Below, one piece after another: positions 45,653 to 64,000 of a stretch of 64,000 nt of DNA. A program made the position numbers and the translations under genes. The notes beneath the pieces were generated by a model. It ran no database searches. It was not told the origin of the DNA and worked only from the letters and a program-made list of their open reading frames with translations. The DNA comes from Bacillus subtilis subsp. subtilis str. 168 (lineage in GTDB: Bacteria > Bacillota > Bacilli > Bacillales > Bacillaceae), in NCBI RefSeq assembly GCF_000009045.1, contig NC_000964.3, positions 2,108,001 through 2,172,000 on the forward strand. Direction: 5' to 3'. Each line of letters starts with the position of its first letter. Position 1 is the first letter of the stretch.

Positions 45653-45717
45653 AATACCTCCACTAATTTTATTTTTATTCTAAATAAAAGACCGATTTTA
45701 TCCTGTTCCTATTTACA

Positions 45718-46886: not shown

Positions 46887-47018
46887 TCAATCAAGTATCT
46901 TATTTTTTGGCTTTATATCGATTTCATCACAAGAAGGACATGAAAAATCTGAATTGTCACCTATCCAACTAAAATTGCATTCATTACAAGTCCAATCAAT
47001 TTGTTCTCTACTGTCCAT
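46887..47018 (-). CDS. yotD: 43-aa zinc-ribbon microprotein
   Basis: Hand-translated MDSREQIDWTCNECNFSWIGDNSDFSCPSCDEIDIKPKNKILD; AAAGAGGTG RBS. Confidence 0.75.
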   Translation of the reverse strand: MDSREQIDWTCNECNFSWIGDNSDFSCPSCDEIDIKPKNKILD

Positions 47019-47057
47019 TATAGCTACACCTCTTTCTTAATAAATTCAACATTTTAT

Positions 47058-47249
47058 CTACTTCCAATTGTAGTTCTCCTTTTCTTTCTCTGAATCACCT
47101 ATATGCGAAAGAATCCAATTATGATAACCCTCTTCTCCACAATTAGGGCAATCCATTTCAGATATAACCTTTAATGTGTTTATCATAGGATTTTTAGCAA
47201 ACAAGTGATGATTGCATTTTCTACAAAAAAACACAACTTCATTTTCCAT
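47058..47249 (-). CDS. yotC: 63-aa zinc-ribbon protein
   Basis: CRKC...CPNC. Confidence 0.8.
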   Translation of the reverse strand: MENEVVFFCRKCNHHLFAKNPMINTLKVISEMDCPNCGEEGYHNWILSHIGDSEKEKENYNWK

Positions 47250-47292
47250 GTCTCCCCTTCCCTTCTGTATAAAATTAGAATTTTAATTAAAT

Positions 47293-48120: not shown

Positions 48121-48163
48121 TTTGTCTCCACCTTTCTTAATGAAAAATTTATTTCTTTGGCGT

Positions 48164-48192
48164 GTATAAATTAAAATAATCTCTCCATAATA
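48164..48192 (+). promoter_or_regulatory. SigG-type promoter of sspC
   Basis: GTATA-N17-CATAATA. Confidence 0.8.
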
Positions 48193-48238
48193 TGATTCAA
48201 ACAAGCTTGTTTTCATTACACTTTAGGAGATGAATAAG

Positions 48239-48457
48239 ATGGCTCAACAAAGTAGATCAAGATCAAACAACAATAATGATTTACTAATTCCTCAAGCAGC
48301 TTCAGCTATTGAACAAATGAAACTTGAAATAGCTTCTGAGTTTGGTGTTCAATTAGGCGCTGAGACTACATCTCGTGCAAACGGTTCAGTTGGTGGAGAA
48401 ATCACTAAACGTTTAGTTCGCTTAGCTCAACAAAACATGGGCGGTCAATTTCATTAA
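48239..48457 (+). CDS. sspC: Alpha/beta-type small acid-soluble spore protein C
   Basis: [10 protein letters not shown] and [21 protein letters not shown] signature. Confidence 0.97.
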
Positions 48458-48461
48458 TTTA

Positions 48462-48488
48462 TGAGGGGGATAATTCCCCTCTCTTTTT
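48462..48488 (+). terminator. Terminator after sspC
   Basis: GAGGGGG-ATAATT-CCCCTC then a T-run. Confidence 0.8.
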
Positions 48489-48647
48489 TAAGTCTTCTCT
48501 AAATCCATACAGAACTAATGGTATTGTTTCCACCTCTTTTTATGTCACTAACTACTATTATTAAGCTCCTCGACTTGCACTGTGTAATGTCTGTACCATT
48601 TTATTGCCTCCTTTGATTAGCCACTCTATAAATTGCGTTCTCTTCAT

Positions 48648-48713
48648 TTAGAATATATCCAGCGCTCCGTCACAATAAGAACATTTGCCACTACCCTCTT
48701 CACATGTACACAT
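48648..48713 (-). CDS. Putative 21-aa Cys-rich microprotein or remnant MCTCEEGSGKCSYCDGALDIF
   Basis: Hand-translated; GGAGGTG RBS upstream. Confidence 0.45.
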   Translation of the reverse strand: MCTCEEGSGKCSYCDGALDIF

Positions 48714-48756
48714 ATATTTGTCACCTCCAATTTCGCTACCGTCAACTGACAACTCC

Positions 48757-49110
48757 TCAGATATCATTTAATTGTTGTTTCAGCTCAAAGAATTCATCAT
48801 GAAGAAATTTAAATTTATCCTTATTTACGTATGCTTTGTCATCATTAAGATCAAAGAGATCTAAGTACTTTCTTTTATTTCTTTTAATAATTCGTAAAGC
48901 AATAGTGGCACTTACCCACTCTTCACCTTCCAATTGGGTTAAGACTTCACTTAGCTCGAATAACAATTCAAGCTTAGCTTTGTTTTGCTGTGTTTCGAGT
49001 TTTAACAGATCCCTTTGTTTTTCAAGTAAAGTTGTTTCAATTTGGTATTTCTTTTTCTCTAAGGCTGTTATCTGTTCGTTGGTGTTATGTATTTTGTCTC
49101 CTACTTCCAA
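48757..49110 (-). CDS. yosX: Phage coiled-coil protein
   Basis: 117 aa, TTG behind AAGGAGGTG. Confidence 0.82.
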
Positions 49111-49221
49111 TGAATCACCTCCTTAAAGTTTGAATAAAATATTAGTTTTAAAAAATGTATATTTTTTGTTTTTGTATATTAGATAAAAAAACTGTCATTT
49201 CATCATCTTCTATTATTATAT

Positions 49222-49247
49222 TATACATATTATTTGTATTTGTCTAT
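49222..49247 (-). promoter_or_regulatory. Repeated phage promoter element (probably SPBRE), copy 1
   Basis: Minus strand ATAGACAAATACAAATAATATGTATA with a TAGACA -35-like hexamer and TATAAT downstream; 25/26 identical to 62277-62302. Confidence 0.75.
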
Positions 49248-49340
49248 AGTTATTTTATTTTCATTCTTAAATCCATTTACTTAGCCCTGACAAATGCTAA
49301 AAGGGCTTGAGCCGTATAATGAGTGCAGCTAAACACAATT

Positions 49341-49754
49341 TCACATTATATGAAAAATAATACTCAAAGCAAAGATAAGGTTCCCAAAGACATAAGCCAA
49401 ATAAATATACCTACTATGGCTCACTGTTTCGCCCTCCAACACGTCTAAAACCTTAAACATGCTTAGGACTGTGTATATAACTGAAAATGCTGTCCAACAG
49501 AGTATAAGGATATTTTCATGCATAATTAAACCGTTATATGCCAAGGGGATGATTAAAGAACTCCCCTTAAGCAAAGTAAACAGGTAAATTAAATTCTTAT
49601 TTCGTTTCGCATCTTCTGGAGTTGAATTATCAAGCACACTCTTTACTTTTATATACGTATTGCTTTCCCCTCGCATAATCAACCTGACCTCATTAATGTT
49701 TAATACAATTAGATAAGCTGATAGAAATAAAGTTACATATGTTATAGTAAACAT
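49341..49754 (-). CDS. yosW: Phage membrane protein (about 4 TM); start uncertain
   Basis: Hydrophobic ORF followed by a hairpin at about 49283-49308. Confidence 0.72.
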
Positions 49755-49828
49755 CTCCTAATTTTATATTTGTGTTGGGTTGGCTTTTACTCACCCTCAA
49801 ACTCTATACCGTTAATATTTGCTTTTAT

Positions 49829-50119
49829 TCAAATAGCTCCCCCTTTAAAATCATTCACTTGATCAGCAATGTTTTCTTTAATTGTATGTGGCAACTGATC
49901 AATCCCTTTTATAATCCGTTTCTGACCAGTTTTCCTAATTTTTGTAGTCATCTCTTTAAAACACTCTAAAGCAGTATCTGAGATTTCATCATATAGCCCC
50001 TGAATTTTCACTAATACACTTAAATATTCTTCGTCACCTTCTTCAAATAGCGACAACCCTTCTTCAAGTTTGTTGATCTTTTCAACACTCTTTATTATTT
50101 TATTTTTATCCTTAAACAA
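49829..50119 (-). CDS. yosV: Phage hypothetical protein
   Basis: 96 aa, TTG start behind GGTGGGGG. Confidence 0.78.
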   Translation of the reverse strand: MFKDKNKIIKSVEKINKLEEGLSLFEEGDEEYLSVLVKIQGLYDEISDTALECFKEMTTKIRKTGQKRIIKGIDQLPHTIKENIADQVNDFKGGAI

Positions 50120-50332
50120 TTAATCCCCCACCCAGTTTTGGTCATGCATCTTCATGAAGTTAGCTGCTGCCTTCTTGTATCTCAGGTCTTTCTCGTACTC
50201 AGCAACTTGTCTCATATGTTCAATAAATTCATCTTCAAGTCCTTGTAACTGAAGAAACCCAAAGCAAAGACCGTTCCTATAAAGCATGTCGTCATATTTC
50301 GCTTGTAAATCTCTTTCTTTGCTGTTAATAAT
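50120..50332 (-). CDS. yojW: Phage hypothetical protein, 70 aa from ATT (55 aa from internal ATG 50287)
   Basis: Hand-translated ...MLYRNGLCFGFLQLQGLEDEF...NWVGD; AAGGAGG sits before ATT 50332; gene symbol recalled tentatively. Confidence 0.6.
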   Translation of the reverse strand: MINSKERDLQAKYDDMLYRNGLCFGFLQLQGLEDEFIEHMRQVAEYEKDLRYKKAAANFMKMHDQNWVGD

Positions 50333-50438
50333 CTCTTCCTCCTTAAATATTAGATAAAAGTATTCTTTTATTCGGAAATATTTCCAACAAAAATCTTTTA
50401 TGGTAAATTAAAAACAATGTATTTAAAGGAGTGTTAAT

Positions 50439-50684
50439 TTGCGAAAAATATTAAAAATCGTTAGCTTACTGATTCTATTGTTATTATTGGTTTATTCTTT
50501 CTTCAGTCCTAATTCACAATTATTTGTGTTCGTTCAGCTAATCATAATTGCATTTTTGATTGGTTTTGGAATTAACTGTTTTGTTAAAAAAGAACGATAC
50601 CAAGGTACTCTATACTTCGTAATTGCAATATGCAACATTACCATTAATCTTGATAAAATAAACGAGTTAATTCAGAGCATTTAA
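50439..50684 (+). CDS. yosU: Small 3-TM membrane protein, inverted relative to neighbours
   Basis: 81 aa, TTG behind AAAGGAG; hairpin 50696-50727 shared with yosT. Confidence 0.78.
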   Translation: MRKILKIVSLLILLLLLVYSFFSPNSQLFVFVQLIIIAFLIGFGINCFVKKERYQGTLYFVIAICNITINLDKINELIQSI

Positions 50685-50723
50685 CTTATACATATATAGG
50701 AGGTGGGAAATTACCCACCTTCT

Positions 50724-51173
50724 TTATTGGATAGGAACTAATACTTCACATAAGTGATTATCAATCATTTGTGAAGTATATCTCTCTATAATTGGTTCTC
50801 CTCTCATAGTTAGACTATTTTTTTCTATTTCAGAGAAAATATTGCCCCAAAATTCACTTACTGCCTCTTTTGTATGGTCAAGCAAGAAAACAGCGTATTT
50901 CCCTCCAGGTAACTTACCAACTTGAGCTGGTTGCAGCACATTAAAATCTTCATTTAATACAACACCAACATCATAACGGCATTCCTCTTTAGGAGTAATA
51001 CTTGGATCATCTTGTGGAATTCCTAAAATTACAGAGTTATGAAATACACCATTCAACTGTGCCCACTTTTTAAAAGATTCCATTAGTTCTTTGTTTTGCT
51101 TACCACCATACTCTCCAACGTTTCGGAAATAAGCAATCCTTAATTCAGGTAATTCTTCAATAGTTATTTTCAT
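50724..51173 (-). CDS. yosT: GyrI-like / AraC effector-binding domain protein
   Basis: IAYFRNVGEYG, DDPSITPKEECRYD, LPGGKYAVF, IERY. Confidence 0.85.
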   Translation of the reverse strand: MKITIEELPELRIAYFRNVGEYGGKQNKELMESFKKWAQLNGVFHNSVILGIPQDDPSITPKEECRYDVGVVLNEDFNVLQPAQVGKLPGGKYAVFLLDHTKEAVSEFWGNIFSEIEKNSLTMRGEPIIERYTSQMIDNHLCEVLVPIQ

Positions 51174-51267
51174 ATTTTAATCCCCTTTCCTAGAAAAAGG
51201 TAATATGATTAAAAATGTTTTTCAAGATGACTTTTAAAATAATCTATATTTCAAATACAAAATCCAA

Positions 51268-51696
51268 TTACTTCGTTCCAGTTGATCCGTGCCCACCTCG
51301 GTCACCGTTGCCTAGACGGTCTACCTCGATCAAGTCAACTGCCGGCATCTTCTTCATAATTCTGAACTGGCAGATTCGATCCCCTTTCTTAATCTTTGTG
51401 TCACGTAACGCATAAGCAGGAAAGAACCAAAAATCGTTGTCACCCTTATAAGACTCATCGATAACACCCATTGAGTTTGTTTGAATCACACCAAAGTTCT
51501 TATACGTACTCGAACGAGGAACGACATGTGCTTCGTAACCTTCAGGCAATTCCATGGCCACTCCCAATGGAACAAGTTTAAATTCATCTTTTTTGATCGC
51601 TACATCTTCAGCTGCACGAAGATCAATCCAATCACCTTGCTCCATTTTGTTAATTCTTGTTTGTGTTTCATCTAAGTATTTGATTTTAATTTGCAT
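51268..51696 (-). CDS. yosS: Trimeric dUTPase
   Basis: [30 protein letters not shown] motifs. Confidence 0.95.
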
Positions 51697-51741
51697 TATG
51701 TATTAGCTCCTTTTAATTCAAGTTTGTTTAAAATTACCCTT

Positions 51742-51984
51742 TTATCGTAATTCCTTTAGTAACTCATCAAGTTCATTAGGCTTAAAACCAACACTTCGGT
51801 TTACTTCTTCTCCCTGATCACTCAGCAGAATGGTTACCGGTACTCCCATGACACCAAATCTTGCTGCTACTTCTGGTTCCTGTGTAACGTCAACAGTCTC
51901 AAATTGAATATTTACTTGTTCTAAGTAATTGGACACCATTTTACATGGATTGCAATTAGGCTGCTCTAATTTAATTAATCTCAT
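51742..51984 (-). CDS. yosR: Thioredoxin/NrdH-like redoxin
   Basis: CNPC active site, GVP cis-Pro; ATG 51984 overlaps the nrdF stop. Confidence 0.9.
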
Positions 51985-53778
51985 TGAATACATCCTTTCT
52001 CGGTAAAAATGAAATCTGAATCCTTTAAAGGCTCCACTGTTGCTTTTTTGTATCCATTCCCTTTAGTTGAAAAGAAGTCATGGGATTTAGTCTTAGTGTT
52101 CAAACCATTGATAACAATTGGATTAACATCCTCTTCTTCAAACCAATGATCAAAGCCCAGATTGTTTAAAGCTTTATTTGCGTTGTATCTGATGAATTTC
52201 TTTACATCTGGAGCTAATCCAACCTGATCATAGACATCTTCTGTATACTCCAATTCATTTTCGTAAAGTTCCTGCAGTAAGTTTAAAGCCCATGCGTACA
52301 GTTCTTTTTGCTTCTGTGGCGTTTGCTTCTTATAAATCTCTTGAGCTAACAATCCTACATATACGCCATGTATCGCTTCGTCTCTAATACCCTTAGTTCA
52401 ACCGAGTTCGCTACTTTCGGTTCGTTGCTCTGTCGCAACCGCCTTACGTTACCGTAAGGAGCAGACTATATCATCATCCCTGTAGGATGCCTCCCGTTTC
52501 GATTTAAGGGGTTCTCACCCACGCCAATAGCTTGCGCCCTACTCGTTTTGCGGAATTTCGCCGCCTATGCGATAGTCGTTGAACGTTCTATGCGATCCCA
52601 TAAAGTCTTCCATCTTCTTTTATGTCGAATTAGACTAACGTAACGAGGATGAAGGCTGTATTTTTCACCAGCTTCAACATTGTTCATTCCAGCAATCAAA
52701 TCATAGATTAAATTTGTTGCCTCCATATTAGTGAGCTTTGACATTGAATTACTTTCTCCAGGTTGTCCTGACATTAATCCAATTTTCATTGCATGTAGAG
52801 TATTTTCTTTAGGTGTAACTATTTCTAAGTTCCGAACGTGGTTGTTTAGTTTATTTCCATCTATGTGGTTTACAAACATTCCTTTTGGTATATCATAAAT
52901 AAAATATTTTGCGACTAACCTATGTACTAAATAGTTCTGTGTTCCTTTTTTCGGATGCGTGTATCCTATCATTTCATAGCCATGTGGAGTAATAAATGTC
53001 TTTCTTGGTTTCTTTAATTTTTTTGATATGATAACTCCCGTTTCCGTTATCCACCAAGGTGCTTCTTCGACTTCTTTCCTTATCATTTTCACCTCCTTTG
53101 GGTTCGCATAGCTTCGCTGCTGATTGTCCTAATAAGGATTTTCCAGCAATTAGAGAGGTTCACATTTGCCGTTGCCGACAAAAGGGACTATTAAATAATC
53201 AGGTTAATGATCTCTCCACTTTGCATTAACTTTCCTTGTCCATAAAAATAAAGTGGGTAATAAAACCCTGAGTAGAAAAGAAAACTCTCCAGGAACACAG
53301 ATGCAACCATTCCTTTAAATAAAGAAATTTCATCGTTTTTCTTGATTGTTTTATAGACTGAAACAATTGTTCTAGCTTTCTTTTGAAGAAACCTATTGTT
53401 TTTCACCCATTCAAAGACTTCATTGATCTGCTCGGTTGGAGCCAATGTTAGAAAGATGTTGCTGTAAGACTTTGCATGAACAGCATTTTCCATCATGGCC
53501 ATGAAATTTAAAACTGCCTTTCTTTGATGTCCATCTACGTGTTCAGCCACGATCGGCATCCCCGTATTCCCCTGCTCTGTATCAAGAAGCGTAAGTCCGG
53601 CCAGTACCTTCATATAAGTGTCCTGCTCATTTTTTCCGAGGTACTTCCATGTGAGGAGATCGCCGTTTAAAGCAATCTCTTCCGGAAGCCAGAACTGTTT
53701 CACGTTTTGGTTATAGAACATTTGGGTAAAATCGTCTTCATGCTTTGACCAGTTTGCTGCGTCATAAATTTTTGTCAA
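51981..53778 (-). CDS. nrdF: Class Ib ribonucleotide reductase beta subunit, spliced: join(53778-53198, 52389-51981), 329 aa
   Basis: Joined exons read [17 protein letters not shown]; [25 protein letters not shown]. Confidence 0.94.
52390..53197 (-). mobile_element. Group I intron (808 bp) in phage nrdF
   Basis: 5' exon ends in U, intron ends in G; R-like CAACGACTA and S-like GATATAGTC elements; removal restores the frame. Confidence 0.92.
52565..53086 (-). CDS. yosQ: Intron-encoded HNH homing endonuclease
   Basis: VHRLVA...[17 protein letters not shown]; ATG 53086 behind AAAGGAGGTG. Confidence 0.92.
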
Positions 53779-53892
53779 TTAATCATGTCCTTTCAATTGA
53801 AATATTTTTTTCCGAAAAAAATGCAGTGAATTTAAAAGCTGAATTGACAGACTCCTATATTACTGTCAAACATTCGAAAGGAATGAAAGACA

Positions 53893-54111
53893 GTGAATTT
53901 TTTAGATAACCTTATATCTTTGTTAGAGAGTACAGTCATTTCAACTGGATGGTTGTGTGATAGGCTTTTATCATGTTTAATCGAATATATTTTGAAGCTT
54001 ATATTTGGTTTACTTTGTAATGCTCTTATGAGAAAATTTAACAAAATTAAGTGCAAACGACGTCCGGGAGATCCTGTTAATTTTGAACCAAAACGTAAAC
54101 GTACCTATTAA
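53893..54111 (+). CDS. Putative 72-aa protein antisense to the nrdE-nrdF spacer
   Basis: GTG behind AAAGGAATG; hydrophobic middle and basic tail; stop overlaps the nrdE stop in TTAA. Confidence 0.45.
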   Translation: MNFLDNLISLLESTVISTGWLCDRLLSCLIEYILKLIFGLLCNALMRKFNKIKCKRRPGDPVNFEPKRKRTY

Positions 54112-57100
54112 ACTACACAGGACAAGCATCCCTCTTGGGTCGTATCTTTAGTTCTGGCATAATATAAAGTTTTAATTCCACGATGATGTGCGTAGAGGTC
54201 TATTCTATTTAGGTCTCTCGTCGTCATCGTATCCTTTAAGAACAACGTAAATGAAATCCCTTGGTCGACGTGCTGCTGAATTGTTGCAATAAGATCAACT
54301 ACCTTAAACATATCCATGTCGTATGCTTCCTTATAGAAGAACCAATTCTGAGCCGATAAACCTGGCATCGGATAATATGTCTTACTGTTTCCGTATGTAC
54401 GTTCCTCAATTCTCTCCATAATTGGCATTACACCTGCTGTAGATGATTGAACATATGAGATGCTTCCCGTAGGCGCAATAGCTTGTCTATAGGAATGATA
54501 AAGACCATATTTCATTACATCTTCTTTAAGCTTCATCCAATCTTGAATATTAGGAATATGTTGATCTCCAAATAGCTTTTTAACCTTTTCATACTGAGGG
54601 CTATAATCATTTGTTACGTACTTTTCGAAATACTCGCCTGATTTATAAGTCGAACCATCAAACTTGTAGTATGTCTCCCCTGTTTCTCGTGCAATTTCCA
54701 TAGAACGCTGCAGTGAGTAGAAGTTAACCATCATAAAGTATGTATTTGCAAAATCCTTAGCTTCTTCACTTTCATAAGCAATATTATTTTGAGCTAGAAA
54801 TCCATGGAGGTTCATCTGCCCTAGACCAATTGATCTCATTAATGTATTTGCTCTCGCAACTGCTGGAGCATTTACAATGTTTGTTTTCCTTGTGACAGTT
54901 GTCAGTGAGTCAATTGCTATTCTGACTGTTGAAGCAATTGATTGATTACTCATTACATTTACAATGTTCATTGAGCCAAGATTACATGAGATATCTAAGC
55001 CAATTTCATCCTCTTTATCGTAATCCGTATAAACTGATACTTGTGACGATTGAAGTACCTCTGAACAGTTACCAGTAACAATTCCATTGAAAATCAGAGA
55101 GTGATAGTCTTCTTGTGTTGTATCATAAACATCCTCAACACCATCTTCTTCAATACTAATAATTTCAGCTGTAAAATCATGCTTTGGCTTTCTTGACTTA
55201 GGTTGCAATGTCTCAGTTAACAAATTGAATTTATAAACATCGTATTCTTTCATTTCAACAATACTCATAAACAACTCTCTTGAGTTTCTATCTTGAATAC
55301 TGATTTTGTGTGTTGGTTTTACATTGTAAAGCTTAGAACCACCTTTTCCATCAGGAAGGAGTTCTTGTGAGCGCTTGTTGTTAGAATAAATCGTTGTATA
55401 AACACCCATGTTCAGTAACAGCTTCTGAACGTCCTGAAGGCTCTCATAGTGGATGGATGTTAACTCAATAGTTAATGCTTTGGCTTTATGATTTGCATTT
55501 ACACACCCATCAGTCTGGAATAAACCCGATAAATAAGCTGCTTGCGTTTCCTTATTAGCTTGAAAAATGAATTCTGGGACTCTTGTTTTTGTTTCTTTGT
55601 TCATACCGAACTTCTTCAAGATGTCAAATAAGACAGTACTATTCATGTAGAGCAAATCTTGTTTTTCTGGGTTGGCCATATTAAATGTTGGGAGAAGTGA
55701 TGTATTGTGCTTATAAGCACGATCAACCTTGTGTTTTTGAATAATACGGTGAACTGCATCAGTAACTTTCTGCTCAAGAACTTTTTTATTATCGTATAAA
55801 TAAATCTTGGCAGTTTTTTCAGTAATGGTTCCATCACCAGCTATAATGCCCATAATGTATGCAAGATCGGGTTCATGAATTTTCCCGTATGCTCCTTCAG
55901 CTGATTGGACTAATAATTTATCGCCTGTTTTCAGTTGATTCAATTGGAGCTTTTGAATTTCACCATCTCTTTTCACATAGAATTTGTGCCACTCAGTTGC
56001 CCTAATTTCATATCCTTGCTTCGTTTTGACTTTAAATATTTCCGCATCTTTTTTAGTCAGTTGCATTGGAATTGCATCTACAATTGTGGTACCTTTGCTA
56101 CCAACTGCAAAATCTTTTGTTCTATTATCAATGACCACTTTAAGATCATTCTGCTTTTTATAAAGATCGGCTGCTTTTTCATATCCATTCTCAGTTAAAA
56201 GAAGTGTTTCTCCAGTAACGCACAAATTTGAAAACTTCACTTTTGAAATATGTTCATTTGGATGCACTTTATTTACATTGTCAGCGAACATAATATACGG
56301 ATAGCCAGATTCGCTTCTTAGAATAGCCAATTGCTCCAACAACTTTCGAGCATTTCCCTTTGCTTTTCTAACTCTTGGATTTTCAACAAGCTCATCATAC
56401 ATTTCATTAATGTCTAGCTCATCTAGATACTGCCCATACTCCTTGTATACTGAATGCGGATAGAACATGTAATAATCCTTGTCTTCCCTTGCCAATTCAA
56501 TAAATTTGTCTGGAACAACTACGCCAATAGACAGTGTTTTAACTCGGACATCTTCATCAGCACTTATTTTTTTGGTATCCAGGAAGTCTGTAATGTCTGG
56601 ATGGAATACACTTAGATAAACTGCTCCTGATCCTTGTCTTTGCAGACCATTCAAACGTGTTCGCTAAGCACGTCCCGCCATATGGCTGCTTCATGTTACC
56701 ATGAAGGTTAGACTATATCTTCACCCTCTAAGGGTGCCTCCTGTTTCGACTGCCAATAGCTTGCAGCCTACGCCTTTCGGCTAGTCGTTGCACGTTCAAG
56801 ACTTAGTCTTGCTTCGCTCATGATTGTCCCTGTAGGAGTTCCCATGAATTAAAGAGGTTTTCGATCACCATTGCTGATGAAAGGGGCCAAATCAACCCAT
56901 TTGGTCGGCATATCTGAAGGCATTATCTAGAAGTTTCATAACACCTACGACACCTTTAGTCGCATTCTCTACGTCTTTAATCGCTTCACCTTTGGCTCTT
57001 AGTTTGTTTAGATTTAATGCTACTCCTCCACCTAGCTTAGAAAGCTGCATGGAAATATCAATAGCACGTGAAATATCATTCAAACTGTCGCCTACTTCAA

Positions 57101-57614
57101 GTAAGAAGCAGCTCACCATTTCACCTCTTCGCTTACGTCCAGCATTAAGGAAAGTAGGTGTTGCTGGCTGATACTCTTGTTTCATCATAGTATGTACTTC
57201 CTCAACAGCCTTCTCGTAATCGCCATCAGCGCAATATAAAGCCACAATTGAGACACGATCCTCATACCTTTCCAGGATCTTTGTTTTATCGTTTGTCTTC
57301 AATGCGTAGTCATTGTAGAACTTAAAGGCACTCATAAAAGAAGGGAATCTGAATTTGTAACTGTAAGCAATCTTATAGATTGATTTAATCTGTTCGAATG
57401 TATATTTGCTTAAGAATTCTTCCTCGTAATAATCATTTTTAATCAGATAGTCCAGCTTCTCTTTCAGATCATGGAAAAAGACTGTGTTTTGATTTATGTA
57501 ATCAACAAAGTAACTATGTACGGCCTCCTTATCCTTTTCAAATTGATACTTCCCATCTTTCTGGATCATGATTTCATTATTGAGCTTGATCCAATTTGGT
57601 ATTGTGTTTGTCAA
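54108..57614 (-). CDS. nrdE: Class Ib ribonucleotide reductase alpha subunit, spliced: join(57614-56895, 56642-54108), 1084 aa including the intein
   Basis: TTG 57614 behind AGGAGG; QPATPTFLNAG; joined ADQMG|QRQG; SNLC/SE; APTGSIS; C-terminal CLSC. Confidence 0.94.
55068..56222 (-). mobile_element. Intein (385 aa) with LAGLIDADG endonuclease in NrdE
   Basis: Starts CVTGETLL, ends IVTGN before Cys of the C-extein; blocks LAYIMGIIAGDG and YLSGLFQTDG. Confidence 0.93.
56643..56894 (-). mobile_element. Group I intron (252 bp, ORF-less) in phage nrdE
   Basis: GGT|TGA...CTG|CAA junctions; CAACGACTA and GAAGATATAGTC core elements. Confidence 0.92.
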
Positions 57615-57972
57615 TAAGTTGTACCTCCTGAATGATTTTCTGTAGATCTTGTTTCGTTCCACTAAGTTCAAACTTTAATAACAATGGTGTGTGGAACTTA
57701 GCTGAAAGCTTGTCTCCAGCTAAACCATAGTTATCACCCCAAACCTTGTTACCACTAACAGCAACTCCTCTAATTTTATTTTTATTCTTATTGATAAAAC
57801 TCAAAGTCCTTTCAGGTACTTCCCCAAAGCCTATCGTATATGTAATATGTATGAATTCTTGATTGATGATCGTATCATCAGTTATTTCAATTGCCTCAAC
57901 GTCAAACTCTTGTTGCAGCGCTTTGACAAACCTTTTTACATTTCCTGTTTTACTCTCATATGTAATGATCAC
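57577..57972 (-). CDS. nrdI: NrdI flavodoxin
   Basis: YESKTGNV, TYTIGFG, SGNKVWG, KFELSG. Confidence 0.94.
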   Translation of the reverse strand: MIITYESKTGNVKRFVKALQQEFDVEAIEITDDTIINQEFIHITYTIGFGEVPERTLSFINKNKNKIRGVAVSGNKVWGDNYGLAGDKLSAKFHTPLLLKFELSGTKQDLQKIIQEVQLIDKHNTKLDQAQ

Positions 57973-58325
57973 TAATCGTTATAAGCCCCTGTAATTAATT
58001 TTGTAGTCACTGTTTCAGCTTCATTTTCAGCGTAATTGAATGCTTCTGATATCTCACGATTAATGTCGCCCATTTCCATGTAGCCCTGTGCCATACTTTC
58101 ATATAAGGAACTTTTCTTAACTGGAACGTAATCATCTAGATTCTTTTCTAATTCAACAAATTGATTTCCTTGTTGGTCAGTTGCAATAATCTCTCCTTTT
58201 AATACAGGGAAAGATTGCCCATCAGCTAAATGAATATGAGTGTTCTCAGTGGCTACTGTAAAGTTAATAATGTTCTTCTTTTTTACATATGGTTGAGTTG
58301 GATCAATACGTCTAGCTGCCCCCAT
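57972..58325 (-). CDS. yosL: Phage hypothetical protein
   Basis: 117 aa from ATG 58325 behind AAGGAG (ORF track extends to 58382). Confidence 0.78.
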   Translation of the reverse strand: MGAARRIDPTQPYVKKKNIINFTVATENTHIHLADGQSFPVLKGEIIATDQQGNQFVELEKNLDDYVPVKKSSLYESMAQGYMEMGDINREISEAFNYAENEAETVTTKLITGAYND

Positions 58326-58412
58326 TTTACATCTCCTTATTTTTTGTATTTTGAATAAAGCTGTGATTTTATCTAGATTCAAGCAGTACCTATTCGTCCT
58401 CCTTAGGAATTG

Positions 58413-58613
58413 TCACTCTTCTTCGATCGTCCATCCGTTTAATCTTGCGTACTTTAATTTTCTTGAATATCTACGCTTCCACTCGTCCCAGTCCTTCTTC
58501 TCTTGACCTGACGTTAGTGAGCCTCTGTACTGATTTTGTCTTCTTTTCTTGTCTAGCTCTAGTATATCGCCAACCCATCTAGGAACTGACGGCCTATAAT
58601 TACTTTGCGACAT
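58413..58613 (-). CDS. yosK: Phage hypothetical protein
   Basis: 66 aa, GGAGGA RBS. Confidence 0.78.
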   Translation of the reverse strand: MSQSNYRPSVPRWVGDILELDKKRRQNQYRGSLTSGQEKKDWDEWKRRYSRKLKYARLNGWTIEEE

Positions 58614-58657
58614 CTATTCGTCCTCCAATTGTTTCTGTATAAATTTCATTGTGTCTT

Positions 58658-58852
58658 CTATTGTTTCGGCCACCCTTCTCCAAGGAGTTTTTTAGCCTCT
58701 TCAACATCTGTGAATCTTTCAATCTTGTGTCTATAATCATCGATCCACCGGTAAACACATACTGCATTTTCTTCAACTTTCATGACGGTGTACTGCTGCA
58801 TAGGATCTTCTAGAAGATGAAGTTTCTGATCTTTATAAAACCCTTGAATCAT
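58658..58852 (-). CDS. yosJ: Phage hypothetical protein
   Basis: 64 aa, GAGGAGG RBS. Confidence 0.78.
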   Translation of the reverse strand: MIQGFYKDQKLHLLEDPMQQYTVMKVEENAVCVYRWIDDYRHKIERFTDVEEAKKLLGEGWPKQ

Positions 58853-58872
58853 ATAATATCCTCCTCTTATTT

Positions 58873-59007
58873 TTATTGAATTTCTCTTACTTCATGCGGT
58901 ACTCCGCTTTCTTCTTGAGCATATACTGCATCATTATGAGCCTCAATTGCATCATCATAAGTATTAACAAGTGATCCCATACAATAAAGTCCATATTTCA
59001 TTTTCAT
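58873..59007 (-). CDS. yosI: 44-aa phage protein
   Basis: Hand-translated MKMKYGLYCMGSLVNTYDDAIEAHNDAVYAQEESGVPHEVREIQ. Confidence 0.7.
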   Translation of the reverse strand: MKMKYGLYCMGSLVNTYDDAIEAHNDAVYAQEESGVPHEVREIQ

Positions 59008-59038
59008 CTTCATCATCCTCTTAATTTATTTTTATTCT

Positions 59039-59509
59039 TTAAAGTAAACTGCCATCAATAAGCAATACCATCTCTTCGTCATTAGAAATCTCCTCAAGAA
59101 CCTGTTTAAACGGCATGAGCTCTTTATCTTCTCCTGGCGCCCTTCCATGTTGTATCGCCGCATAAACTTGCCCAACTTCTGTCATTTCATCACTTAACTC
59201 TCCATCATCATCATCTGTAACAGTATCTGTATACAGTTCCATTGCCTTTTCTTTTGTATAAGCCTTAATCAATGCATAATAGGGGTCAAACACTTCAAAA
59301 TACTTCATAATGGGTTTTTCAACTTCCAATTCCTCAACGTAATCGCCTTTAATTTTCACATCATCAACTCCGTTTTCGAGCAAATGATCTACCATATCCT
59401 TGCCTAGTTGTTCTAACGCTGCTCCTTGAACAGATGGACTTTCGTCATTAAATCCTTCATGAGCGTAACAAGTTGCTTTTATTTCAAAAACTGCTGCTTT
59501 AATTCCCAT
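59039..59509 (-). CDS. yosH: Acidic phage hypothetical protein
   Basis: 156 aa, AAAAGGAG RBS. Confidence 0.8.
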   Translation of the reverse strand: MGIKAAVFEIKATCYAHEGFNDESPSVQGAALEQLGKDMVDHLLENGVDDVKIKGDYVEELEVEKPIMKYFEVFDPYYALIKAYTKEKAMELYTDTVTDDDDGELSDEMTEVGQVYAAIQHGRAPGEDKELMPFKQVLEEISNDEEMVLLIDGSLL

Positions 59510-59569
59510 AGCACAATGCTCCTTTTAATATTTATTTTTTAGATTTAGAATCCACTAATCTCTTTAAAA

Positions 59570-59932
59570 TCATCCTTTTATGGAGAACGAATGAATACCA
59601 GGTACACCCACAACGCTCTGGAATGGATTGAGCACATTAAATTCTATTTCTACCGCCAAATCTCTGTCTGAGTTCATTTGAATTCTTTCGATTTTCACAT
59701 TAACTTCGCTTGTTTCATCTTCTAGACTAGTCATTTTCATTTTATAAGTGCCCTTAGATACACCGCCTAGTTCAACCCATTTATAAACCAATAAATCATT
59801 ACTAATCCTTACTGTGATTTTATCTTCGTTTTCAGTTGCCTCTACATTTTTGTAATGAAGAACCATTCTTGTTTCATTTGGTAAATGTTTATTCAGTGTT
59901 TCTTCATATACGGCAATTTCTTTTAAGATCAT
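59570..59932 (-). CDS. yosG: Phage hypothetical protein
   Basis: 120 aa, AAAAGGAG RBS; bracketed by two palindromic sites. Confidence 0.8.
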   Translation of the reverse strand: MILKEIAVYEETLNKHLPNETRMVLHYKNVEATENEDKITVRISNDLLVYKWVELGGVSKGTYKMKMTSLEDETSEVNVKIERIQMNSDRDLAVEIEFNVLNPFQSVVGVPGIHSFSIKG

Positions 59933-59974
59933 ATCTAACTCTCCTTTTGAAAATTTCGGCTTAAAATAAAACTT

Positions 59975-60100
59975 TTATTTAGACTTATTGTCGTTTTGCA
60001 AAATGGTGTCAGCAGCTAAAGATGTAGCTTTCATTTCGCCGACAATTTTACCAGTTGATTTCTTTTTGAAAATAATCTTTGCAGCATTATCATCACTCAT
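59975..60100 (-). CDS. yosF: 41-aa phage protein
   Basis: Hand-translated MSDDNAAKIIFKKKSTGKIVGEMKATSLAADTILQNDNKSK; AAGGAGG RBS. Confidence 0.7.
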   Translation of the reverse strand: MSDDNAAKIIFKKKSTGKIVGEMKATSLAADTILQNDNKSK

Positions 60101-60113
60101 CTTGAGTGCCTCC

Positions 60114-60461
60114 TTAGATAAACAATGTGCTAACATATAGAACAATCAATGCGAAAGTTGAATGAAATAAAGACTTACCGGCTTTCTTGAAAATGTTCTC
60201 ATCTTTTTCCTGATCTGACCGTTTTACACCTTTGACAAATACATTGAGTAAAACACCAATAACAAATGCATGAGGTAAAGTGACATGGACATTTTGAATA
60301 TTGTATGTATCAATAAGCAAAGGATTTAACACATGATTCAATCCGTAATAAACAATTAGTGACATAGTCAACGCTTCAACAAAAATAAGTAATCCAACTA
60401 CAATTAACGAACCTGACCCCATAAAGAATCCGCTCCAAATATCTTTTGTATCCTTATTCAA
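60114..60461 (-). CDS. yosE: Phage membrane protein (about 3 TM)
   Basis: 115 aa hydrophobic ORF, AAAGGAG RBS. Confidence 0.8.
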   Translation of the reverse strand: MNKDTKDIWSGFFMGSGSLIVVGLLIFVEALTMSLIVYYGLNHVLNPLLIDTYNIQNVHVTLPHAFVIGVLLNVFVKGVKRSDQEKDENIFKKAGKSLFHSTFALIVLYVSTLFI

Positions 60462-60475
60462 TAAATATCTCTCCT

Positions 60476-60871
60476 TTAGTCTTTTTTAGTTAGCCTCTGC
60501 CACCAGGAAGTTTTTATCTGTCTTTGATTTTGAGTATCATTGTTTTTTGCTTTCTTATTATTGTGTTCTTCGCATTCCTTCAAGCTTTTTTCATCTATAA
60601 TTGTCTTAATAACTCTGTCTGTTTGATATGTCCACTCGTTATGTATGTTTCGCTGCCTGTCAGTCACTATGACATATTCATTAAGTCCAGGGATATAAAC
60701 TTTACCTCCAATTTCTATAGGCTCAATATCTATATAGCCCTCGAAGATTGGTTCAGTACGAGTTACCTTACACACTGGCTGAGTAATCCACCTCTCTGTG
60801 CCTGGGGCACGGTGTGAGTAATACCTTTCTTTCATAACCAATCCTTCAATCGTTGCTTTATGGCGTCCCAC
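60476..60871 (-). CDS. yosD: Phage hypothetical protein
   Basis: 131 aa, GTG behind AAGGAGGTG. Confidence 0.8.
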   Translation of the reverse strand: MGRHKATIEGLVMKERYYSHRAPGTERWITQPVCKVTRTEPIFEGYIDIEPIEIGGKVYIPGLNEYVIVTDRQRNIHNEWTYQTDRVIKTIIDEKSLKECEEHNNKKAKNNDTQNQRQIKTSWWQRLTKKD

Positions 60872-60909
60872 TTATTCACCTCCTTATAAGTCTCTTTAAA
60901 AATTGAATT

Positions 60910-61452
60910 TTAATCTAAATGCTCCATTACAATTTTTAGATAATCTTTATAGTCAGTAGCAACCACACTGTCTCCATTAACAAGCTGTTCAGTTTTAACT
61001 CCAAAGAACCACCTGTCACCTATCCATTGACGACCAGTCATGTTGTTTAACCCCAGCTCATCATGAGACCTAAATGGATACACTTCTTCAATTTGCTCAA
61101 TCATAGCTTTTATTTCTTTAAAGTATTTAGATCGTTTTTTGAAAGCATAGAATCCGTCTACTTGATTTTTAACAATGTCATTTTTAAATATTTCATACGC
61201 TTCTGTTCCTTCGTAGACTCCAAAGTACTCAGAGTGATAAAACGAGAAGCCTTCCTTGACTCCATACTTTTCTTCGAATTTATCAAAGAAAGAGTTTATA
61301 TCCTCTTTGCGTTTCTTCTCAGATTTATACCAGTCACTTTCCTGTTTAACTTCGTAAATCGGTGCATCTAAGGTTTGCATACTCTCATCTCCCCTAATAT
61401 TTCTTTCTGCTTGTTTTAATTTGTCGTATACTGCGCTTGCCCGGGAAATCAT
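60910..61452 (-). CDS. yosC: Phage hypothetical protein
   Basis: 180 aa ORF. Confidence 0.78.
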   Translation of the reverse strand: MISRASAVYDKLKQAERNIRGDESMQTLDAPIYEVKQESDWYKSEKKRKEDINSFFDKFEEKYGVKEGFSFYHSEYFGVYEGTEAYEIFKNDIVKNQVDGFYAFKKRSKYFKEIKAMIEQIEEVYPFRSHDELGLNNMTGRQWIGDRWFFGVKTEQLVNGDSVVATDYKDYLKIVMEHLD

Positions 61453-61496
61453 TAGTATTTCCTTTGATCATATTTCCCCATCTATATCTTTCCTTT

Positions 61497-61676
61497 TTAT
61501 AGATCCACCAACATCAGACCGTCTAGTCCATATACCTTGTCTCTTTCAGTTAACTTTCCGTTTTTTCTCATTGTCTTCAATGCATTTTCTGCTTGTTTAA
61601 GATTTGAGTAAATATGTGGGTGGTAACCATAGAGATATTTCCCTTCACTCTTTGCAGCAATTACAAACATGTTCAT
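61497..61676 (-). CDS. yosB: 59-aa phage protein
   Basis: Hand-translated MNMFVIAAKSEGKYLYGYHPHIYSNLKQAE...MLVDL; AAGGAG RBS. Confidence 0.72.
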   Translation of the reverse strand: MNMFVIAAKSEGKYLYGYHPHIYSNLKQAENALKTMRKNGKLTERDKVYGLDGLMLVDL

Positions 61677-61806
61677 TCATCAACTCTCCTTATTCAACTC
61701 TTAAATTTAGACAAAGTCTTCATTTTTTCTTTTTTAGACTGAAATCTATGTCGAATTTTTAACCTTTGCCATACCATATACTATCCTTACTAAAGGAGGT
61801 GGCAAT

Positions 61807-61926
61807 ATGGGATTCTACAGCGGATATTCTGGTGGATACTCTGGCGGCGGATACGGAAGCAGCTTCGTCTTGATCGTTGTGTTATTCATCCTATTGATCA
61901 TTGTTGGTGCTACATTCCTATACTAA
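61807..61926 (+). CDS. yosA: YjcZ/SscA-family 39-aa membrane microprotein, inverted moron
   Basis: MGFYSGYSGGYSGGGYGSSFVLIVVLFILLIIVGATFLY; AAAGGAGGTG RBS; own terminator at about 61969-62001. Confidence 0.85.
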   Translation: MGFYSGYSGGYSGGGYGSSFVLIVVLFILLIIVGATFLY

Positions 61927-62029
61927 TCTCAGAGTAAATCCAGAGCCTTTGAATCACCTCCCTGTTCGATAGACGCCATAAAACTTCTTATGGCGTTTTT
62001 TATTTTTACATTTGTATAAAAGGAATATT

Positions 62030-62242
62030 TTATCCTCTTATTTTGTATTTGATATTTAATCCTAAATGTTCTAATGTCTTCTTAACACTTAAATTGCTGC
62101 ATTCATTTTTCACTTTATCGGAATAACCCTTTGCACAACTTTCACAACAGTTGAAGTCTACATAAGTTTTTTCATCGCTGATCCTAAGACAAATTGTTTT
62201 TCCGCTTATGTACTCCTTACAGATGTCACATATATGATTCAT
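62030..62242 (-). CDS. yorZ: Cys-rich (zinc-finger-like) phage protein
   Basis: CDIC...CCESC; ATG 62242 behind AAGGAG. Confidence 0.78.
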   Translation of the reverse strand: MNHICDICKEYISGKTICLRISDEKTYVDFNCCESCAKGYSDKVKNECSNLSVKKTLEHLGLNIKYKIRG

Positions 62243-62276
62243 TAACACTCTCCTTCGCCTCAACGTAAATTTATTA

Positions 62277-62302
62277 TATACATATTATTTGTTTTTGTCT
62301 AT
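62277..62302 (-). promoter_or_regulatory. Repeated phage promoter element (probably SPBRE), copy 2
   Basis: Minus strand TAGACA-N17-TATAAT embedded in ATAGACAAAAACAAATAATATGTATA. Confidence 0.75.
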
Positions 62303-62308
62303 CGGTTT

Positions 62309-62491
62309 TTAAATAATTTCTTTAATATTTTTCAGCTTTGCAAAAACAGACATTATATCTTTATCACACCGCTCCCAAACACGCTTTTCTTCAGGCCTTA
62401 AAGTGTTTTCTAAATAAACATAAAGCTTATCCAATACTCCTTCAGCAGCATCTATATCATCAATTACAAGATCCCTAACAATATCCTTAAT
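62309..62491 (-). CDS. yorY: 60-aa phage protein, ATT start
   Basis: Hand-translated [28 protein letters not shown]...KEII behind GGGAGAGGG. Confidence 0.68.
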
Positions 62492-62503
62492 GATACCCTC
62501 TCC

Positions 62504-62731
62504 CTATGAAAATATGGTTATTGCTTTTCCATTGTCATTTTTTATGTATGGGGAATATTTTCGGTCTAGGCAATTCTTCGACTTTCCTTCTCCCAGGCTT
62601 ACATTATAAATATCCCCTACCTCATAAACTTCGTATGCTTGTTCTTTTGCATGTTCAGGTGATAGCGCCTCAATAACTAGAGACGCATTTTCACCTTTGC
62701 TGTCTTTACACCTTACATAATACTTTTTCAA
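62504..62731 (-). CDS. yorX: Phage hypothetical protein
   Basis: 75 aa ORF. Confidence 0.75.
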   Translation of the reverse strand: MKKYYVRCKDSKGENASLVIEALSPEHAKEQAYEVYEVGDIYNVSLGEGKSKNCLDRKYSPYIKNDNGKAITIFS

Positions 62732-62770
62732 TAAACATCCCTTTATCCTTTCATTTTTTCTCGAAACAAT

Positions 62771-63142
62771 TTAATGAATCAAGCCTTGATATGTATTTGG
62801 TTTAATATTGTGTAGATTGTTTAGGTTAGTTAACCGCTCGATTTCCTTACTCATCGCATAACATTGATCAACATAAAATTTCTTTGGCATAATCACAAAC
62901 TGGCCATCTTTAAATCCTTCCGCACCGGCTTCTTGCATTGCTGCTGGAAAGATATCAATTAGACTACCTTTCTTAAAGCTCTCAATATACTCATCTACTG
63001 AAATAGTGTGCAAAACCTTAGCTAATACTCCATTAGTCTTTTCATCGTTATGTACGTAAATGCTTTGTGTATGTGGTTCAATAACTACAAAATCAAGAGC
63101 GTTTACCAAGTCAATTTTTTCTTGATCAGTTAGCATATTCAC
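62771..63142 (-). CDS. yorW: Phage hypothetical protein
   Basis: About 121-123 aa, AAAAGGAG RBS, coupled to yorV. Confidence 0.78.
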   Translation of the reverse strand: MNMLTDQEKIDLVNALDFVVIEPHTQSIYVHNDEKTNGVLAKVLHTISVDEYIESFKKGSLIDIFPAAMQEAGAEGFKDGQFVIMPKKFYVDQCYAMSKEIERLTNLNNLHNIKPNTYQGLIH

Positions 63143-63357
63143 TCTCCTTTTAAATACGACTTGAAAAACTCACTTAAGTTATCAGCCATAGCTGCAGCAA
63201 CTTCAGAAAAGTATTTATGTCTTTTCTCCTCTGATTTCAAAAACTCAACTGTCGTTTCTGCAATTTCTTTAATCTTGTCTTCTTTGATATTTCCATTCCT
63301 AACACGCTCTTTAATCTCCTCTGTCTCTTTTTTTAGGGACTCTGGGTAACTATCCAA
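63139..63357 (-). CDS. yorV: Phage hypothetical protein
   Basis: 72 aa from TTG 63357 behind GAGGAG. Confidence 0.75.
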   Translation of the reverse strand: MDSYPESLKKETEEIKERVRNGNIKEDKIKEIAETTVEFLKSEEKRHKYFSEVAAAMADNLSEFFKSYLKGE

Positions 63358-63400
63358 TCGATCCACTCCTCTTATTTTATATTTGTTTAAAAGACAAATT

Positions 63401-64000
63401 TTATTCAGATTCTTTATTAACATATGTATGTATTAATTCTTGAAATATAGACTCAAGCACACTAACTGTAATTGAATTACCGGCTTGCTTGTATAATTGT
63501 GAGTTACTTATTCCTGCTGCAAAAGCTTTTTCAAAATCTTCGTCATCAAATGCTTGGAGTCTCCAACATTCTAATGGAGAGAGCTTTCTAATTTTATATT
63601 TTGGGTATTCTCCGATTGCTACACCATGTCGATCAATTGTATTAACCGTGAAAGCCGGTTCTCCGTTTTCTTTAAAACGTCTTCCATTCTGTCTTTTCTC
63701 TTCTCTTTCTGGCGTTAACACTGCCCTTACTTCTTTCTGCTTTTCTGCGATTTTAGGTTCTCTGTGACCGCCGCCCATTGTAGTTAATGTCGGTGAAAGT
63801 CCTTCAGGCGAGTAAACTCTTTTGATGGCATCGTGACCTTTTAAATCCACGTGTCCCACCATTAACGGCTCCCTTACTTCTTGTTTTTGTAGCGGTGCGG
63901 TTCCTAGTTGCTCAACAAGTTTCTTCGTCTTTTCTTCATTTAAGTAATACTTCTCATCAACAAAATCCTCAAGAATTTCTCTCAACCTCTTTGTGACAGT
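63401..64000 (-). CDS. mtbP: Multispecific C5-cytosine DNA methyltransferase, C-terminal part (N-terminus outside the window)
   Basis: Motifs IX/X RKLSPLECWRLQAF and QLYKQAGNSI preceded by SPTLTT and PAFTVNT target-recognition segments. Confidence 0.9.
   Translation of the reverse strand, partial: TVTKRLREILEDFVDEKYYLNEEKTKKLVEQLGTAPLQKQEVREPLMVGHVDLKGHDAIKRVYSPEGLSPTLTTMGGGHREPKIAEKQKEVRAVLTPEREEKRQNGRRFKENGEPAFTVNTIDRHGVAIGEYPKYKIRKLSPLECWRLQAFDDEDFEKAFAAGISNSQLYKQAGNSITVSVLESIFQELIHTYVNKESE

Follow-up and report, generated by a model that had tools for sequence, protein, structure and literature searches.

Single genes at the right end of prophage SPβ of Bacillus subtilis appear to be exchanged between related phages slot by slot, at short palindromic boundary elements that follow one another along the phage genome in a constant order. 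We analysed a 64,000-nucleotide stretch of the B. subtilis subsp. subtilis str. 168 chromosome (NC_000964.3, positions 2,108,001 to 2,172,000; hereafter the window, to which coordinates refer unless another sequence is named), in which positions 44031-64000 are the right end of SPβ, identical to Bacillus phage SPBc2, and positions 1-44030 are host chromosome. The gene at issue, yosG, belongs to a long early array (yorZ ... yosB-yosL, nrdIEF ...), in which all genes around yosG are on the minus strand, and is flanked by two copies of the palindrome, site A on the side of yosF and site B on the side of yosH (Table 1). Comparison with relatives supports the view that yosG is a swappable cassette of a single-gene slot, and recombination over short homology at the sites is the mechanism towards which we lean.

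An earlier reading of this DNA, made from the letters alone (hereafter the sequence-only reading), had described yosG as a site, a ribosome-binding site (RBS), an open reading frame (ORF) and a second site in succession, and every element of this anatomy is found where it had been placed. On the minus strand, the 18-mer of site A (59978-59961) is ATAAAAGTTTTATTTTAA and that of site B (59581-59564) is ATAAAAGGATGATTTTAA. The TAA stop codon of yosF (59977-59975) supplies the first three bases of the site A core, and the TGA stop codon of yosG (59572-59570) falls inside the site B spacer, GGATGA; the spacer of site A is GTTTTA, and the two cores are alike at only 10 of 16 positions. The RBS leader of yosG accompanies the gene in relatives (locus L056). 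A consensus scan of 58800-60600 gave 7 promoter-like matches compared with 6.9 expected, none of them at the sites, and 0 terminator-like matches were found in the same interval. The lack of a promoter or terminator between the sites, also claimed by the sequence-only reading, is thus borne out, with promoter matches at the level of chance, and its description of yosG as a single gene that lacks a promoter and has a site at either end holds.

A family of palindromes with strict spacing

The TAAAA-N6-TTTTA sites form a real family, with strict spacing and intergenic placement. Alignment of the 34 copies in SPβ extends this core to a full consensus, TYTRAA-TAAAA-N6-TTTTA-TTYARA, of about 28 bp, which comprises shared 11-bp inverted arms and a 6-bp spacer that has no consensus. 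The outer arms are symmetric whatever the direction of transcription: T at position -6 (25/34 copies) is mirrored by A at +22 (32/34), and Y at -5 is mirrored by R at +21. The 18-mer pattern noticed in the sequence-only reading has 3 matches against 0.02 expected. For the core, the expectation is 0.5 copies in the window and the count is 10, all of them within 45.6-63.4 kb; in the prophage part of the window (20 kb), 0.29 copies would be expected from pentamer frequencies instead of the 10 observed, and the 44,030 bp of host DNA in the window contain 0. Among spacer lengths of 0 to 12 in the window, N6 is represented by 10 copies and every other length by 0-1, and in the whole SPBc2 genome, the 34 copies at N6 compare with 0-4 at other spacers and with 2.6 copies on average, and at most 8, in Markov-simulated genomes. 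Allowing one mismatch in an arm yielded 7 matches at N6 versus 9-14 at other spacers and thus brought in mostly noise, although three of the seven are decayed orthologues.

Read against the annotation tables, roughly 30 of the 34 sites either lie between genes or share bases with a stop codon. The sites are placed between the stop codon of one gene and the RBS of the next, and the TAA of the left arm often serves as the stop codon itself; some copies lie in non-transcribed or divergent intergenic DNA. We found no earlier description of the palindrome element in the literature: a comparative paper on SPβ relatives makes no mention of such sites, and in the original GenBank annotation, 2 of the 34 fall inside generic stem-loop features, the features labelled 'palindrome' being other sequences.

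Two known kinds of element were considered as the identity of the palindromes and rejected. ComK-type AT-boxes have the form AAAA-N5-TTTT, and the enrichment is seen at N6 only, with N5 at background. SPBRE is the operator of the SPβ master repressor MrpR/YopR/SroF, for which chromatin affinity purification followed by sequencing (ChAP-seq) gave 10 peaks, all of them SPBRE (PMC10516654). The consensus of SPBRE, which we derived de novo from the ten MrpR ChAP-seq promoters, is about ACAAATACAAAWAATATGTATA and is wholly different in sequence from TAAAA-N6-TTTTA. Like the palindrome, SPBRE is a repeated intergenic element of the same phage, but it is asymmetric, overlaps a -35/-10 promoter and is present in about 10 copies.

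The two elements are adjacent at aimR, where a palindrome (SPBc2 76171-76186) lies immediately 5' of SPBRE, and at yosX a palindrome is placed between the SPBRE promoter and the RBS (Table 1), which suggests a possible interplay with MrpR-controlled promoters. A further repeated sequence, the multi-copy leader AGARTAAAAATAAAAT, followed by an RBS, comes directly after several of the sites, in the leaders of mtbP, yotJ, yosI and yoqN (SPBc2 113683, 132766, 119409 and 90637; window 64000+ / 45666-45681 / 59023-59038); it is also found within the nrdI coding sequence.

An ordered scaffold with alternative cassettes

The relatives examined were eight phages, to which one prophage in a genome contig (the only locus retrieved from the genome contigs with YosL) and 43 IMG/VR loci were added; about 45 SPβ-like phage and prophage loci underlie the comparison. 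The initial BLAST comparison already indicated that homology breaks at the sites, the alignment with BUCT083 running from 59559 and that with SPR from exactly 59961. Phage SPR has yosF and an identical site A, followed by an unrelated gene for 88 amino acids (aa) that ends in an identical site B, whereas BUCT083 retains yosG and loses homology just past site B. The sequence-only reading had suggested looking for a different gene in the slot between yosF and yosH, and such genes turned up many times, that of SPR being one example: the 34 loci with both sites contain 19 distinct sequences between A and B, which encode at least eight protein clusters. About eight distinct loci have yosG itself, with an identity of at least 48%.

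Judged from the aligned genomes, the spacers are position-specific and stand in a fixed order, with many alternative cassettes between them and junctions at the edges of the cores. No more than 19 different 16-bp cores are seen in the eight phages, and each spacer occurs at the same relative position in 6-8 of the phages. The flanks of each core come in 2-5 unrelated versions, the break falling precisely where the core ends, and the degenerate outer arms change together with the cassette that they adjoin. The order of the spacers is the same in the eight phages and in 45 further loci, without exception: ... GATCAA, TTTGTC, TATTCC, TTCAAT, GTTTTA (A), GGATGA (B), GGGTAA, GAATAC, CTAATA ... The core of site A is identical in 36 loci, in which it is preceded by 5 and followed by 13-14 classes of context; for site B, there are about 20 upstream and 9-10 downstream classes in about 30 combinations. 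Single-nucleotide variants of the spacers occur at about the neutral rate.

Gene content changes also in slots that lack any site, for example, yosD/E/F and yosH-K in the gene map of all loci. Among the variable cassettes are free-standing HNH endonuclease genes, in phi3T (phi3T_164) and BUCT083 (L006 14751-15470; L008 19290-19939).

Crossovers within the sites

Ends of high-scoring segment pairs are 9-fold enriched near the sites compared with random positions. For individual sites, we applied a four-gamete criterion, in which the identity of the cassettes is judged on 200-bp flanks and all four combinations of left and right flanks are required. Quartets of this kind were found at 7 of the 9 sites tested, including 6 quartets at site A. 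An unbiased scan started from 61,805 conserved single-copy 16-mers, of which islands with at least two contexts on both sides were kept; four-gamete evidence was obtained in 7 of 17 site islands versus 2 of 136 non-site islands (Fisher P = 1.8e-6; about 28-fold). The largest context multiplicities all belong to sites (20x9, 10x9, 5x14, 8x6), the maximum for non-site islands being 6x3. Because of this four-gamete evidence, we conclude from the extant genomes that past crossovers occurred within the 16-30 bp islands that the sites constitute.

The four-gamete evidence outside the sites is confined to a non-palindromic element of about 45 bp (containing TTTCCCGGGCAAGCGCAGTATACGACAAAT; ~61405-61452, minus strand) at the 5' end of yosC. 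This element occurs once per phage, with several unrelated contexts on both sides (also at L006 10800 and L009 11593, gene-sense); in SPβ, it encodes the first YosC residues, and in other phages an RBS and another gene come after it.

Laboratory hybrids between phi3T and SPβ were considered as a real-time test of the sites, and both proved uninformative about them. In Hyb2 (L057, Hyb2phi3Ts-SPbeta), the parent switches within blocks of 1.4 kb and 4.9 kb that are identical in phi3T and SPβ (gene-sense 7189-8592 and 16729-21623) and both begin and/or end at palindromic sites, and the hybrid PP526179 is phi3T-like over most of the region.

Exchange is allelic rather than excisive

The sequence-only reading had further proposed that exchange between A and B would take out yosG, so that a single site would separate yosF from yosH. 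No fused, hybrid, single-site or empty allele exists among the about 45 loci, and the search of these loci for a single site joining yosF to yosH, which that reading had called for, came back empty. Loci that seem to be without site A mostly carry one arm change, for example, TGAAAGTTTTATTTTA. Among 298 inter-site segments, no cassette was found in a different slot, apart from one partial, internal paralogous match. The deletions seen in relatives (L017, L048) have their endpoints at ordinary short direct repeats and not at pairs of sites, contrary to the proposal: L017, which is without yosH, apparently underwent a deletion between 12-bp direct repeats common to site B and the yosI leader (TAAAAGGATGATGAAAATG, ~59016-59035; L017 9688, gene-sense). 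What looked like half of site B at such junctions, and was considered as a mark of a fixed cleavage point, is the natural yosI leader. In L056, the A-B slot is occupied by two genes that are not separated by a site. The cassette idea for yosG thus stands insofar as the gene is swapped for other genes between phages, and falls insofar as it was thought to excise itself by exchange between A and B. Because there are no hybrid or single-site alleles, the spacer order is fixed and cassettes are not found in other slots, we conclude that exchange is allelic, between phages and at orthologous sites, and not an integron-style excision.

The attC sites of integrons are imperfect palindromes of ~57-141 bp with R''/L''-L'/R' boxes (RYYYAAC ... 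GTTRRRY). The resemblance is in the cassettes, promoterless single ORFs that are each followed by an imperfect palindrome, in one orientation and behind a shared promoter, and the succession of site, RBS, ORF and site at yosG is real; moreover, in T4-type phages, neighbouring copies of promoter-early stem-loops (PeSLs) form mini-circles by exchange (PMC2839356). The integron-like model, in which recombination of A with B excises yosG and one site is left, is nevertheless extremely improbable: besides the missing alleles, the limited likeness of the A and B cores and the lack of movement between slots, the SPβ sites are about 28 bp long and without R/L boxes, in contrast to attC with its about 57-141 bp, and no intI/attI/Pc platform was found, the annotation showing no integrase gene in or beside the yor-yos-yot array.

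Table 1 The yosG slot, the palindromes of the window and tyrosine-recombinase-like genes of SPβ (window coordinates unless SPBc2 is given).
Feature	Coordinates	Strand	Description
site A	59956..59983		core TAAAAGTTTTATTTTA = 59977-59962 minus strand; degenerate outer arms
yosG ribosome-binding site	59941..59948	-	AAAAGGAG; 8 nt 5' of ATG at 59932
yosG	59570..59932	-	120 aa; ORFan of B. subtilis-group prophages; one of at least eight alternative cassettes of the slot
site B	59559..59586		core TAAAAGGATGATTTTA = 59580-59565 minus strand; outer arms
yosF	59975..60100	-	41 aa; upstream neighbour; ends in site A
yosH	59039..59509	-	downstream neighbour; variable or absent in relatives
family member	63388..63403		spacer TTTGTC; mtbP stop
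family member	62017..62032		spacer TATTCC; yorZ stop; 6 four-gamete quartets
family member	60897..60912		spacer TTCAAT; yosC stop
decayed family member	58356..58371		TAAAATCACAGCTTTA, one arm mismatch; 5' of yosL; ortholog exact in other phages
family member	51729..51744		spacer GGGTAA; yosR stop
family member	50355..50370		spacer GAATAC; 5' of yosV
family member	49135..49150		spacer CTAATA; 5' untranslated region of yosX, between SPBRE promoter and RBS
family member	47270..47285		spacer TTCTAA; after yotB
family member	45685..45700		spacer TCGGTC; after yotI
yopP	SPBc2 78691-79767		tyrosine-recombinase-like; outside the window
yomM	SPBc2 40301-41302		tyrosine-recombinase-like; outside the window

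Mechanism of exchange

Our favoured explanation, which we hold with a little more than even confidence, is short-homology recombination at conserved sites that are probably bound by a protein. yosG would then be one allele of a replaceable single-gene slot within the long early operon of SPβ, bounded by two of about 34 phage-wide boundary elements; together, these would form an ordered, 'bar-coded' scaffold, because the spacers differ between sites but match at orthologous positions. Since the sites offer conserved islands among cassettes that are otherwise unrelated, co-infecting or resident relatives would recombine there, and one gene would replace another without a change in gene order or loss of the stop codon upstream and the RBS downstream. 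The exchange would be carried out by the Sak4-type annealase of the phage, YorG, and/or by the RecA protein of the host, rather than by a dedicated site-specific reaction, and the arms may be kept because they act as a dispersed operator, or a site of the roadblock type, for a dimeric DNA-binding protein of the phage or the host. The geometry of the sites suits an operator for dimers no less than a recombinase site: the operators of phage 434 read ACAA-N6-TTGT and are bound by helix-turn-helix dimers.

The core sites of tyrosine recombinases (loxP and FRT variants, dif) consist of inverted arms around a 6-8 bp spacer, and the catalytic set of these enzymes is R-K-H-R-H/W-Y. The palindromes share this arrangement, with an 11-6-11 consensus and strict N6 in a 28-bp element, only sites with like spacers appear to exchange, and the outcome resembles recombinase-mediated cassette exchange. 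In a dedicated site-specific reaction, a phage protein, for example, YopP/SroD or YomM, would bind the arms as a dimer and exchange strands across the 6-bp spacer; only identical spacers would be compatible, hence only allelic swaps would occur and the gene order would be kept. We consider such a reaction unlikely, even though it would fit the core geometry of dif, lox and FRT-type sites, the position-specific spacers in fixed order, the cassettes that never change slot, the junctions exactly at core edges with co-varying outer arms and the confinement of crossovers to islands of 16-30 bp, and even though SPβ, which integrates via the serine recombinase SprA, has orphan tyrosine-recombinase-like genes (PMC8612738). 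YopP matches the Pfam family Phage_integrase (E = 1.8e-10), and both YopP and YomM keep Arg-I, the His and the C-terminal Tyr, but in an alignment that had no PDB sequence match as a check, both carry H-x-x-K in box II and not the catalytic H-x-x-R. To go by these residues, the two proteins may bind DNA without being active as recombinases, as does their paralogue MrpR, a catalytically dead repressor (PMC10516654). The sites differ from recombinase cores as well, in that conservation of the inner arms extends over just 5 bp, with degenerate outer arms.

Several observations favour short homology over a dedicated recombinase: the four-gamete evidence at the non-palindromic junction of about 45 bp at the start of yosC, the deletion in L017 at 12-bp direct repeats and the many breakpoints at gene boundaries that have no site (27/40). 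To the same side, we count the Sak4-like annealase of SPβ (annotation; AAA_24 domain), the H-x-x-K motif in the sole tyrosine-recombinase-like candidates and, although they are uninformative about the sites, the use of long identical blocks by the laboratory hybrids. The position-specific spacers are equally explained by common descent, with variants of 1 nt at about the neutral rate, and the fixed order and slot fidelity, while compatible with a requirement for identical spacers, are equally explained by homology. A shade less likely still is the more specific proposal of natural recombinase-mediated cassette exchange, in which about 30 'bar-coded' sites with heterospecific 6-bp spacers would be read by YopP/SroD, YomM or another dimeric protein; if this were true, co-infecting phages would swap accessory genes, possibly including counter-defence genes, position for position, with the genome order intact.

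There are also points that weigh against short-homology recombination at protein-binding sites. Identity over 16-22 bp is very short for RecA-type recombination, the many exchanges that fall on islands of so small a size could be a sign of an active, site-directed process, and arms of 11-6-11 with position-specific spacers are also how heterospecific tyrosine-recombinase sites look. At the level of gene boundaries, the advantage of the sites is modest, with breakpoints at 11 of 11 site boundaries versus 27 of 40 non-site boundaries (P = 0.046), a contrast that is weak because nearly every gene boundary of the region is mosaic. L048 lost site A through an 18-bp microdeletion that left the neighbours visibly unharmed; if the sites have a regulatory role, it can thus be dispensed with at one of them at least. 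As to the binding protein, the master repressor MrpR is not the binder of the palindromes, because its ChAP-seq gave only the 10 SPBRE peaks (PMC10516654). A second SPβ repressor, SroE, has been described (10.1101/2025.11.27.690993).

If the sites had no role in recombination at all and were only dispersed operators or roadblocks, the joints would stem from illegitimate recombination and selection at any gene boundary. This would agree with breakpoints at most gene boundaries, site or not, with genes that come and go in site-less slots, with the two genes of L056 that have no site between them, and with the existence of dispersed intergenic repressor sites, the stoperators (PMC3029335). We find it quite unlikely, however, given that independent illegitimate events would not leave just an identical 16-bp core between many unrelated partners (20 x 9 at site B), would not yield all four left/right combinations at 7 sites and would not be reconciled with the enrichment of four-gamete evidence at the site islands. 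The palindromes might also be targets of a phage or host endonuclease, the breaks being repaired from a co-infecting relative, which would drive exchange and co-conversion. Free-standing homing endonucleases of T-even phages drive local exchange of this sort, the sites have a symmetric, recognition-like sequence with fixed spacing, and nucleases are at hand, both the HNH genes among the variable cassettes of the region and several annotated in SPβ. Yet with self-cutting at 34 sites the phage would have to protect its DNA, and no system for this is evident; gene conversion would leave variable tract ends instead of joints at core edges; and no candidate enzyme is linked to the sites, so that we hold this explanation to be very unlikely. 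Finally, the location of the sites between stop codon and RBS, with the left-arm TAA often the stop codon, could suggest a signal in the polycistronic RNA, that is, a hairpin, a processing site or a translational coupling element. We give this scarcely any credence: the predicted folds, those of sites A and B included, do not exceed shuffled sequences in stability (z = +0.9, -0.7, +0.2, -0.2, and one at -2.75), which together with the 0 terminators speaks against a hairpin or terminator, the stem would have 5 A-U pairs, and the symmetry of the outer arms is independent of transcription direction, with copies in non-transcribed or divergent DNA.

Comparison with known joints and operators of phages

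The PeSLs of T4-type phages are mobile regulatory cassettes that take part in modular shuffling (Arbiol et al. 2010, PMC2839356; PMC4122927). Like the SPβ sites, they are short repeats between small non-essential genes of hyperplastic regions, bound insertions, deletions and replacements between close relatives, and have been proposed as recombination substrates that shuffle single-gene modules. The SPβ sites indeed bound the differences between relatives, but a PeSL consists of a sigma70 promoter and a terminator stem-loop, and the palindromes have neither a promoter nor a stable, terminating stem-loop. Furthermore, copies of PeSLs are near-identical and neighbours recombine to mini-circles, whereas the SPβ sites share the arms only and show allelic exchange only.

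Closer in function are the linkers, or boundary sequences, known from the modular theory of phage evolution (Susskind and Botstein; the boundaries in the nin region of lambdoid phages, as discussed in PMC3029335). These are short conserved stretches at the junctions of modules, where neighbours that are otherwise unrelated can recombine by homology, and we favour this function for the SPβ sites, which have alternative modules on both sides and recombinants that crossed over within the sequence. What distinguishes them from such boundary sequences is that they make up a large, sequence-defined palindromic family, with 34 copies per genome and statistical evidence of crossovers. From these comparisons of sequence, the SPβ sites would work like PeSLs and boundary sequences but differ in kind, as promoter-less, unstructured palindromes with position-specific spacers and ordered allelic exchange.

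For the conservation of the arms, binding of the stoperator type is a plausible model. Stoperators of cluster A mycobacteriophages (L5, Bxb1) are repressor-binding sites, 24-34 per genome, in short intergenic regions (PMC3029335), and the SPβ sites resemble them as a short motif with tens of mostly intergenic copies genome-wide (34). Stoperators, however, are 13 bp long, asymmetric and oriented with transcription, unlike the palindromes of SPβ, and are bound by the immunity repressor, whereas the master repressor of SPβ binds SPBRE, a different element (PMC10516654).

The modular theory predicted conserved linkers at module joints, but in most phages none were found and illegitimate recombination was invoked (PMC3029335). 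SPβ in B. subtilis 168, a tractable model, now offers a large sequence-defined family of joints with population-genetic evidence of crossovers inside them, such that homology-driven, site-specific and illegitimate exchange of modules can be told apart by direct tests in a model phage. The sites also hint at a putative DNA-binding protein that would have about 34 targets, and the lysis-lysogeny circuitry of this phage is being actively studied; in addition, the sites could serve as natural landing pads for the engineering of SPβ-type phages. Phages of the SPβ group carry the alternative anti-Gabija genes gad1 and gad2 at the same locus (10.1101/2023.05.01.538930). The scaffold of sites would provide a structural explanation for alternative accessory genes at the same locus in these phages; gad1 was looked for in phi3T and not located.

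The YosG protein

YosG has no match among Pfam, PHROG or PADLOC families, and the homologue search identified it as an ORFan of B. subtilis-group prophages only; no RxxxR motif is visible in its sequence. The AlphaFold2 model (pLDDT 72) is a small all-beta barrel without a significant fold match. The top Foldseek matches, which are weak (E of at least 0.03, TM ~0.45), are to PilZ-domain proteins (MapZ, MotI, PlzA).

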